Origin: Macrostomum lignano
Lineage: Eukaryota
Length of the DNA: 64,000 nt
Direction: 5' to 3'
Assembly (NCBI GenBank): GCA_002269645.1
Contig: NIVC01000161.1
Coordinates: 1 to 64,000 of the forward strand
The notes under the pieces were generated by a model. The model saw only the letters and a program-made list of their open reading frames with translations. It did no database searches and had not been told where the DNA came from. The position numbers were made by a program, and so were the translations under genes. Shown here piece after piece: positions 58,201-61,200 of this stretch (positions are counted from its first letter, which is position 1; each line of letters opens with the position of its first letter).

Positions 58201-61200
58201 GCGACCTTAAATTGTAAATTTTAAGCATACTTTACTTACGAGAAAGCTGTTTTGCGTCATCAATAAAGTACAATAGTAAGACACAGAACAATATTTATTG
58301 ATATTATCGGTTTGGTTTATAGTTGGCCGCTTTAAACGCAGCCGTTTTAGTGTACATTTTTTACTGTTCACTTATGCGATAGACTTTAGCTGTGTAAAAA
58401 TGCGTTTAGGCAGTTAATTAAGTTTATCTAACTAAAAAAGTAATCAAGCTGCTCCCAGCCCCAGTCCAACCATTTTTAAATTGATTGGTCAGTGGGGTGA
58501 GCTGAATGTACGCAATCTATTTTTTATTGCCCAATGTACATTCGCTCTAAAACTTCTACCCCATCTAGCCCCCCCCCTACCCCCCCCCCACTTCACTCAC
58601 TGTTCGTGGAAATCCACTTGGCGCAAGTTTAGGCAGTTAGAAGACCCCCTGCCGCGCTTCTGAGCCCAAACACGCGGTTAAAAGTCTTGTCGTGGGCAGG
58701 CCTCCCGTTATTCAAAGCCAAGGGATCTCCCTGTGTGTTCACTGTATTAAACCTGCCCAGTATTTATGGAACAAGACGCCAACAATAACAATGCTATACA
58801 AGAAGCTTCTACGATAGAAGCAAGCGATATCGAATCAATATCAATATTTGACATTGAAATCGATCTAAATTTGCAGCGTCTTCAAAGTGGCATCCAAGAT
58901 CATCACAGTCTGATACAGAGTCTCGGCAACGATGTCGAACGTCTGGAACTCTCTGATGAGCCAGTGTACGATGATTCCGACGAAGTGCAAGCTCAACTGG
59001 ACGAGCAGCTTAGCAGCATTTCTCGGCATATTAGAAGGCGGCGCGATGAAACGGTTCAGGCTGTTGATTCTGGGGTAAGCATAAGCTAAGCAGAGGTTCT
59101 TTTGTCTACCTGAAAATCACACGACATCAAATGAACATTTTCGTGTCCACCATTTTGTTTATTTTTTATTCAGGACGAAAGTACTAATGCCAATAAATCT
59201 AATATTCTTAGAAAATTGGCAGTCCTATTGCTTGTCGTAAGTGTTGTTTCGTGTTTGGCATGAACGACCGTGTTGCATTTGAGTATCGAATTTTCGGCTG
59301 TAAACATTTTCCTAAATCGAGATTACGAACGTAACCGTATAGAGTCTGAAGAACAACTATTGTTGTTTTTAACTATCAATTTTCAGCTGCTGCTTCTTCT
59401 GGTCCTTCTACCATTCATTCTGCTCACTTGTATGTTCTTATCGGCCGACTGTCTGCTCACCGTTTACCGACTGTTGCCACCGAGATCTGTCTACTGACTA
59501 GACGATTGGCCTGTTTGTAAAAGTACATGCAATGTCTATAGGTCTTGATAAGTTCAGAATAGCCATAGTGTGCTTAGATTAGCAAGTTGAATCGAGTTTG
59601 CTGCTGATGTGATATCAAACCCAATGTTTTTCTTGCATGATCTTTTCTGCTCGAAAAGAAAACGAAGGCTCTTTATATTTTTCCCGATTGTTAAGCACTG
59701 CATGGGTGATTGATACTAGATAGAGGCTACAGGATATGCTGTGCTGCTGTGACATTCAGTGTGATGTGGTTTGATATTTAATGTACATTCCACTATTTGT
59801 GGCTAGTGCCTTCGGTGTACATTAGAGGGGGAATGGGGGATAGAGAGACGACGCGTCTGAACGATCGATCAACCTTAGCCTAACCATAGACAAAAACAAG
59901 ATCAGGCACCCCGTCGCGAATTTTATTGCCTGTTTTTTAATCTTCTCCCACACCCCGGCCGGCGCTATATAATCGAGGCTTGCCTTATCTAGTCGGAGGA
60001 AGTGTTAAAATTAAATCAAATGTACAAATGTACAGCTTTGATTGTAAAAAGCTTGATTTAATTTAGCAATGTACAATTAGGTTTATTAGCGTCAACGAAT
60101 TGCGCGGAAGTAAAGCTGAAAGTACATTTAGTATGTTTTTTAATGTCTTCGTATATCACATGTATGTCCCTTTACAACTTACTAATGAATATGATTATTG
60201 TTTATGCATCGCTGAAACCTGAAAGTTGAATGTCTTGCGCAATCGGATTCGTTCTGCTTGTCATAAGAATTTTGACGTTTTTAAACTTAAAGGCATTTCG
60301 TCCGGTAATGAAAGCATTGTCAATTATTTATTTCTGTTTTTTTCAGACTCGGCCAGCGTCTCTACAAGCTGTAGATCCATCTGAGTCGCCAACTAAAGCC
60401 AGCCTTGAGCTCAATAACGCCCTATCGCAATTGTCAGCAGCTATGACTAGACTGAGCCGTCAGTCAGCCACTGAGAGTCAACAGATTCAATCACAGGGTC
60501 GTCAGGAGCAGCAGCGCCGCTATCAGGCTGCTCTGCTTGCCGTATCATCAGCTCTGGACGGTGTTGAATCGCGTCTGTTCCGTTCTCAGACTGACTCAAC
60601 CGAGAGTGGAGCCGCTTTAGATGTGAATAGTTGTCTTTTATTTAACTGTTTAACTTTGAAATATGTCCGCCATATTGAGCATTTAATCAAGCATTTCATT
60701 TTTGCAACAACTTGCAGTCATCATTTCAATTCTTATACAGATTTCAGGTAAATTAACTAGGTTATACGAGCGTATTTATATCATCTAACTGAGAGCTTAA
60801 AATTCACTTGAGCTACGATACGATACTTTAACTTTATTCACAATTCACTTCGCAAACTTCTGTTCACGAAATGAGTATTCAAGACACGATTGAGCTTTTA
60901 AATGACCTCCATTCTGCCTACGTATGTTCTCCCTTTGTCCTCAAATGAACTTTGGTATGGCCTCGTTCTCGTTCTTAAACGTCTTCCAGTATACGTCCAC
61001 GCGTGTCCTCAGATGATCTCAGTCTAGGCTCTTACCTGCACTCGTGTTCTCACATGACCCCAGTCTGGGTTCTTACCTGCACTCGTGTCGTATCCTCAGA
61101 TGACCCCAGTCTATGGTATTTTTAACACTCGTGTCCTCAGATGACCCCAGTCTATGGTATTTTTAACACTCGTGTCCGCAGATGACCCCAGTCTATGATA

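Follow-up and report, generated by a model that had tools for sequence, protein, structure and literature searches.

The window analysed here is a stretch of 64,000 nucleotides (nt) from the flatworm Macrostomum lignano (assembly GCA_002269645.1, contig NIVC01000161.1, positions 1 to 64,000 of the forward strand), to which all coordinates refer unless stated otherwise. It is spanned by a long spectrin-repeat, nesprin-like gene, and the subject of this work is a short block in the intron after exon 34 of that gene, in which two candidate exons (59174–59236 and 59387–59497) may provide an alternative C-terminus with a membrane anchor. The UniProt model A0A1I8IHH1 (UniRef100_A0A1I8IHH1; M. lignano, 1338 amino acids, aa), obtained from an exhaustive representative search, is 100% identical to the window in the mapped exons, which lie on the + strand at …54242, 54814–55947, 57129–57992, 58877–59074, 60347–60622, approximately 61583–61909 and approximately 62474–62851; no encoding-contig record was found for it. 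The exon numbered 33 (57129–57992, + strand) encodes residues 544–792 of the model, carries a Pfam Spectrin match of 29.3 bits (E = 1.3e-6) and ends in the phase-0 donor ATG/gtgagt, a slash marking the splice boundary here and below. Exon 34 (58877–59074, + strand; guanine-cytosine (GC) content 51%) encodes residues 793–858 at 100% identity, that is 66 aa from RLQSGIQ to AVDSG, between the acceptor ttgcag/CGT and the donor GGG/gtaagc, and is in phase 0 at both ends. Exon 35 (60347–60622, + strand) encodes residues 859–951, from TRPASLQ to GAALD, behind the phase-0 acceptor tttttttcag/ACT. In the initial annotation of this region the main gene was held to continue downstream of exon 34, which is borne out by the model, in which 57992 is joined directly to 58877 and 59074 directly to 60347, and by Pfam Spectrin (PF00435) matches on both sides of exon 34, with 55.6 bits at 22486–23031 and 30.8 bits at 62423–62863 (36.3 bits in A0A1I8IHH1). 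The nesprin-type repeat PF25034 stays sub-threshold, at 20.7–21.6 bits against a cut-off of 35. In a paralogous locus (NIVC01000393.1, positions 558793–579140), where PF25034 is likewise weak in the downstream gene, the gene goes on for at least 8 kb further, and both of its ends, where the N-terminal CH domains and the canonical KASH of a nesprin would be expected, lie outside the window and that locus. The label “nesprin-like” is regarded as reasonable but unproven. Exon 34 itself belongs to a linker outside the repeats, since no Spectrin envelope extends over the junction of exons 34 and 35; a structural argument from a junction-spanning spectrin repeat is therefore impossible, and the linker would be a natural site for a protein end.

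The candidate mini-exon at 59174–59236 (+ strand, 63 nt, phase 0-0, DESTNANKSNILRKLAVLLLV), which had been overlooked initially, sits between exon 34 and the terminal open reading frame (ORF). Its acceptor tttattttttattcag/GAC (ttattcag/) includes a long pyrimidine tract, and its donor is GTC/gtaagt. The candidate terminal coding segment (59387–59497, + strand, GC 49.5%) follows the acceptor ttttcag/CTG, encodes LLLLLVLLPFILLTCMFLSADCLLTVYRLLPPRSVY and ends with a TGA at 59495–59497. Between these elements lie candidate intron A (59075–59173, + strand, 99 nt), with an in-frame stop (GTA AGC ATA AGC TAA) that is used by a read-through ORF considered below, and candidate intron B (59237–59386, + strand, 150 nt), with one in-frame TGA at 59261–59263. 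All junctions are in phase 0, so that exon 34, the mini-exon and the terminal segment read through as one frame. The three extra splice signals match the top motifs of the species, which are enriched for GTRAG donors and CAG or YTNCAG acceptors (PMC8629364), and are on a par with the confirmed sites of the same gene. An Rfam scan of 58000–60700 gave no family in the block 59174–59497. An antisense gene is ruled out, no minus-strand ORF exceeding 54 aa and none over the block exceeding 45 aa; a repeat or transposon origin is ruled out as well, the block being single-copy in the window and in the paralogous locus.

Read from an in-frame ATG at 58766, exon 34 and the terminal segment (58766–59074 plus 59387–59497, 309 + 108 nt of coding sequence) give 139 aa, and 160 aa when the mini-exon is included. 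In the 160-aa product the mini-exon contributes the basic flank NILRK and LAVLLLV, the first seven residues of a 25-residue hydrophobic span (residues 118–142, LAVLLLV/LLLLLVLLPFILLTCMFL), which runs to 59440, is preceded by R-K and followed by the 18-residue tail SADCLLTVYRLLPPRSVY, and has a Kyte-Doolittle 19-mer mean of 3.46. Over the N-terminal 103 residues, acidic side chains outnumber basic ones (24 D+E, 7 K+R), and the prediction is helical. Single-sequence AlphaFold2 modelling of the 160-aa product gave two long helices with a predicted template modelling score of 0.24, one helix being continuous over residues 71–153, and block-mean values of the predicted local distance difference test of 86–93 over residues ~111–140. 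In silico, the product has the features expected of a tail-anchored protein, in that it is without an N-terminal signal peptide and its transmembrane (TM) span lies within ~40 residues of the C-terminus, ending 18 residues before it. A C-terminal membrane anchor is thus a reasonable model-based reading of the Leu-rich ending. The phase-0 donor after 59074, the acceptor at 59387, the TGA at 59495–59497, the 139-aa product and the tail of about 18 aa without PPPX, all noted in the initial annotation, proved correct on re-reading and translation. As regards its 59074-to-59387 junction, the sites and the frame are correct, but with the mini-exon situated between these sites it is probably not the main junction, should the module be used at all. 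In the same way, its “non-canonical KASH or tail anchor” survives in the second half, given the hydrophobicity and the predicted helix, and fails in the KASH label, for reasons set out below.

The 160-aa product would begin in an in-frame ATG extension of exon 34 (58766–58876, + strand), 37 codons long (MEQDANNNNAIQEASTIEASDIESISIFDIEIDLNLQ), whose ATG at 58766–58768 follows cccag/tattt in what is otherwise intron 33; the ATG, its context and the acidic extension into exon 34 were proposed at the outset and hold up on re-reading and translation. The same ATG is also the start of a transcript-based NCBI model, PAA83966.1, in the paralogous locus. Upstream of it, the segment 58537–58765 (+ strand) of intron 33 is free of ATG, with 0 in 229 nt (239 nt in the paralog) against ~2 per 100 nt in the flanking intron and ~4.5 expected; it may be a 5' untranslated region or may hold a trans-splice acceptor at cccag/58761. 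Conservation with the paralog covers its final ~70 nt, the window's divergence from that copy dropping from ~14–25% to ~2% near 58700, and the extension differs at 2 of 111 positions, one of them non-synonymous. Trans-splicing at cccag/58761 as the source of a mini-mRNA is doubtful: GCCCAG is a poor fit to YTNCAG, the trans-acceptor motif of M. lignano (PMC8629364), and the 35-nt spliced leader (SL) of this species ends in an ATG that would open an out-of-frame upstream ORF of 19 codons overlapping the start. Agreement with YTNCAG is seen at three phase-0 acceptors, 58877, 59387 and 60347, and trans-splicing there would place the SL ATG in frame.

The paralogous locus on contig NIVC01000393.1 (GCA_002269645.1) is colinear with 52.4–64 kb of the window at ~90–96% identity, and is taken to be a paralog or homeolog and not the same locus because the identity is only of that order. 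The ORF is intact in this second copy. No indels are found over 58766–59497. Exon 34 has eight differences (three non-synonymous and five synonymous), the mini-exon none, and in the terminal segment the only two changes are synonymous. Intron A differs at 9 of 99 positions, and divergence reaches ~8% right after the stop. Over the larger range of 52400–62900, divergence is ~0% at 60.7–62.9 kb (introns included), 1.6–4% in the exons at ~57–60 kb and 25% in intron 33. This mosaic suggests gene conversion between duplicated copies in a hidden-polyploid genome.

The arrangement is tentatively interpreted, with slightly less than even confidence, as a genuine unannotated alternative tail-anchor ending that would give SUN-independent isoforms on the endoplasmic reticulum (ER) or outer nuclear membrane. 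Several observations weigh against it, and most of them speak at the same time for the principal alternative, a chance intronic ORF, in which a CT-rich intron has merely been translated on paper, the mini-exon is a pseudo-exon, nothing of the module enters mature mRNA, and the 115-aa NCBI protein is an ORF on an unspliced pre-mRNA or outron fragment. Composition is the first of these: the GC content of the mini-exon (33%) and of the ATG extension (34%) is intron-like, confirmed exons of the gene having 51–65% and introns 34–42%. The segment 59387–59497 is rich in pyrimidines, and all three of its frames stay open. Conservation is the second, since divergence between the two copies ranges from 0% to 25% among introns, 22% of 324-nt stretches of intron show conservation equal to that of the block, and intron B, at 1 difference in 150, is as conserved as the candidate exons, for which coding selection gives no explanation. 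Conservation in the paralog was accordingly rejected as proof of coding, being not significant on this mosaic background.

The annotation record points the same way. PAA83966.1, [quoted passage not shown], has 115 aa, comes from the paralogous locus and is 96% identical; it reads through the donor at 59074 to the stop in intron A without splicing, as expected of an ORF called on an unspliced pre-mRNA fragment. Both gene models omit the module, A0A1I8IHH1 skipping it. Precursor RNAs make up almost 7% of the transcripts assembled for M. lignano (PMC5730564). The representative search found only PAA83966.1 and A0A1I8IHH1, and six exact product variants (spliced, retained and read-through) are absent from a collection of 15 billion proteins. 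One homology index returned only PAA83966.1 and missed A0A1I8IHH1 despite 92 and 232 identical query residues; the negatives from that index were discounted as unreliable for M. lignano, because the protein missed is a cluster representative in the collection. Searches of the literature and of supplements returned nothing on Mlig005304. No AATAAA occurs in the 850 nt after the stop (59498–60346) in either copy, and the nearest hexamer resembling a poly(A) signal is ATTAAA at 60010–60015 on the + strand, 513 nt after the stop.

The frequency of similar structures was then counted. With a TM-like ORF defined as CAG followed by an ORF of 20–60 codons with a Kyte-Doolittle 19-mer mean of at least 2.5, four occur on the + strand and three on the − strand of the 64-kb window, and the Leu-rich ORF without the mini-exon is at chance level. 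One of them, at 37218–37397 (+ strand), is a T-rich, strongly hydrophobic ORF (…FLCCVFVKFAFALLIVVFCCFPPIFAAKMVAFLLLVLK…) that begins ~40 nt before the end of the coding segment 36880–37257, in another frame, and continues downstream; it is plainly intronic and illustrates how chance produces TM-like ORFs in introns of the long gene. The mini-exon behaves differently, and it is independent evidence because the initial annotation did not select on it. Open phase-0 pseudo-cassettes of the form CAG…GTRAG number 16 on the non-coding strand, ~0.25 per kb. Among open AG…GT pseudo-cassettes, loosely defined, a C-terminal hydrophobic run of at least 7 residues is present in 14 of 8,255 (~0.15%), and among the AT-rich ones in 8 of 786 (1%). 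An in-phase mini-exon that ends in seven hydrophobic residues, here abutting the Leu run and with R-K before them, is not expected by chance, such an end being present in about 1% of AT-rich pseudo-exons; the probability of the junction-crossing run with its basic flank alone is p ~0.01–0.002, and the composite of a cassette and a TM-like terminal ORF occurs only once in both strands of the window (128 kb). Chance alone would have to produce consensus signals at three splice sites, a phase-0 fit at two junctions and a hydrophobic run that crosses the junction and has a basic flank. The paralog comparison also tells against a chance ORF, with no non-synonymous change in the terminal segment, no indels and a jump in divergence right after the stop. 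With the evidence divided in this manner, the chance ORF is considered only slightly less likely than the tail-anchor ending.

An operon-like pair would account for the module in another way: a spectrin-repeat gene lying upstream would have the anchor as its genuine C-terminus, the part from 60347 onwards would be a separate SL trans-spliced mRNA, and the join of exons 34 and 35 in A0A1I8IHH1 would be minor or purely predicted. The transcript-based Mlig_3_7 annotation, which is cut at SL and poly(A) sites, has a gene boundary at this position, with PAA83966.1 upstream and a 2395-aa Spectrin protein from exon 35; in the NCBI paralog model the latter uses the first ATG within exon 35 (window 60443) as its start and belongs to a gene at 12054–20348 (+ strand, counted within the paralogous locus) with Spectrin and Spectrin_SYNE1 matches. 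Furthermore, the 60347 acceptor TTTCAG/ fits YTNCAG, the terminal ATG of the SL would be in frame at this phase-0 site, and the 850 nt from stop to acceptor are within the operon spacing of at most 1 kb used for M. lignano. Against this stand the phase compatibility of exons 34 and 35 and their joining in the UniProt model, as well as the lack of a poly(A) signal after the stop. The annotation is also fragmentary, exons with clear Spectrin matches being unannotated in the paralogous locus, and the boundary may reflect a broken assembly. On the whole, an operon-like pair appears improbable.

The block 59174–59497 could also be splicing-regulatory and non-coding, the mini-exon, the segment 59387–59429 (with the internal donor ACTT/gtatgt) or both acting as poison cassettes that bring a stop or a frameshift and lead to decay of the long mRNA. 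High intron conservation is often seen around regulated alternative exons, and intron B is as conserved as its flanks; donor-like sequences, GTATGT at 59430 and GTAAAA at 59516, are present too. Such cassettes would leave the hydrophobic continuity and the synonymous-only changes unexplained, and the conservation to which they appeal is not significant against the mosaic background, which makes this a very unlikely explanation.

As for the KASH-like character proposed in the initial annotation, together with a search by the KASH profile, the result is negative. No match to PF10541 was obtained at E ≤ 10 by hmmscan of the 160-, 139- and 57-aa constructs, the HMMER filters discarding most matches above E ~0.1, and phmmer against all PDB chains gave no match to a KASH peptide. 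The candidate luminal tail has 18 aa, not ~30, and ends in PPRSVY instead of a C-terminal PPPX, with its PP at −5/−4. Cysteines are located at −14, in the luminal part, and at −21, inside the hydrophobic span, and neither is at the canonical membrane-proximal luminal position. The SUN pocket needs a terminal carboxylate positioned by PPPX, and no interference with this anchorage is tolerated; the SUN disulfide is not required for binding (PMC3585024). A TM span followed by a PPPX-stop ending was found nowhere in the window or in the paralogous locus, and a hidden canonical KASH reached through the internal donor at 59430 is ruled out, the frame being shifted and leading to no such ending in either sequence. 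Compared with the KASH domains of nesprins, Msp300 and ANC-1, the candidate shares the tail-anchored topology and, on a giant spectrin-repeat protein, a single C-terminal TM span that is rich in Leu and has a basic flank on its cytoplasmic side, whereas it differs in the profile search, the length and end of the luminal part, the cysteines and its position in mid-gene instead of at the 3' end. Judged by its sequence, the candidate anchor is not a KASH domain. A literature search on flatworm KASH or nesprin proteins found nothing specific. [quoted passage not shown]

Returning to the alternative tail-anchor ending, we infer the following course from the sequence anatomy. The 59074 donor would be joined to 59174 instead of 60347, upon which the frame would end 57 codons later, the ending consisting of NILRK as a basic flank, a Leu-rich helix of 25 residues and an exoplasmic tail of 18. 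The transcript would be polyadenylated behind this ending, and the protein would be inserted post-translationally into the ER or outer nuclear membrane, its spectrin-repeat part remaining cytoplasmic. Two products may result. The first would be a truncated long isoform that extends from the upstream exons as far as exon 34 and the anchor, and the second a 160-aa acidic helical mini-protein from the ATG at 58766, on a transcript beginning in intron 33. No canonical SUN lock would be formed, because the tail is without a C-terminal PPPX and too short, and the anchor would instead hold the protein on the ER/nuclear-envelope membrane, like the TM span of ANC-1 without its luminal KASH peptide. The most complete form of this proposal, in which a flatworm nesprin-like gene has a second, internal, PPPX-less anchor that yields LINC-independent isoforms through splicing after exon 34, the start at 58766 or both, including the 160-aa mini-protein, with a full-length mRNA that skips the module, is rated as unlikely.

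Several known systems resemble parts of the proposal. Tail-anchored proteins are inserted by the GET/TRC40 or EMC pathways and form a topological class, not a homologous family. The candidate shares with them the lack of a signal peptide, one very hydrophobic TM span at most ~40 residues from the C-terminus and a short exoplasmic tail; the likeness is one of topology only, and nothing in the candidate points to an insertion pathway or a target membrane. Within the nesprin family, alternative ends are represented by KASH-less SYNE1 and SYNE2 isoforms, by small KASH isoforms from internal promoters and by the KASH and LD-domain endings of Drosophila klarsicht. As in the proposal, internal starts and alternative last exons let one giant locus make several C-termini and several small products; unlike the proposed ending, the known alternative ends either keep a canonical KASH or have no membrane span, and a second TM ending of a non-KASH type in mid-gene has, to our knowledge, not been described. 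[quoted passage not shown] The C-terminus of ANC-1 also has a functional KASH peptide, whereas the candidate would be a separate KASH-less ending. Plant KASH tails of the WIP/SINE type are similarly short on the luminal side and do not require a disulfide cysteine, and their C-terminal motif differs from that of animal KASH (PMC13200780); the candidate ends in RSVY, and no homology to plant tails is claimed.

Some further features of the long gene were recorded. The model A0A1I8IHH1 cuts ~111 nt out of the continuous exon 57129–57992 (residues ~680–700 of the model, TARDRE/PIEACRS) at a non-consensus donor, which is probably a gene-prediction artefact. The region 47259–54275 is one stop-free exon of 2339 codons, consisting mostly of 33-nt tandem repeats (88 copies at 48240–51191 and ~40 copies at 52428–53737) that encode an 11-residue unit rich in Ser, Pro, Glu and Ala. 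Both strands of this exon have several open frames, and its equivalent in NIVC01000393.1 carries five NCBI-called “genes” of 64–71 aa. In intron 33, a palindromic element resembling a miniature inverted-repeat transposable element lies at 58011–58200, with inverted arms of 31–44 nt that are 82–94% complementary; Rfam matches to microRNA families over the palindrome (58048–58163) are sub-threshold, reaching 38.9 bits where the gathering score is 84. The element sits in the segment that is most diverged and indel-rich relative to the paralog.

If the module is a chance ORF, the lesson is one of caution, for CT-rich introns of this genome yield TM-like ORFs several times per 64 kb, and the “hypothetical protein” PAA83966.1 may merely reflect unspliced RNA in which an ORF was called. 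With the module in use, one locus would supply two membrane tethers, a presumed canonical end outside the window and a SUN-independent tail anchor, and M. lignano, in which transgenesis exists (PMC5730564), would offer a direct test of LINC-independent organelle anchoring. Should the proposal be true, the ending would represent a natural, genetically separable form of what mutagenesis revealed in C. elegans ANC-1 as the “TM span without KASH” function.

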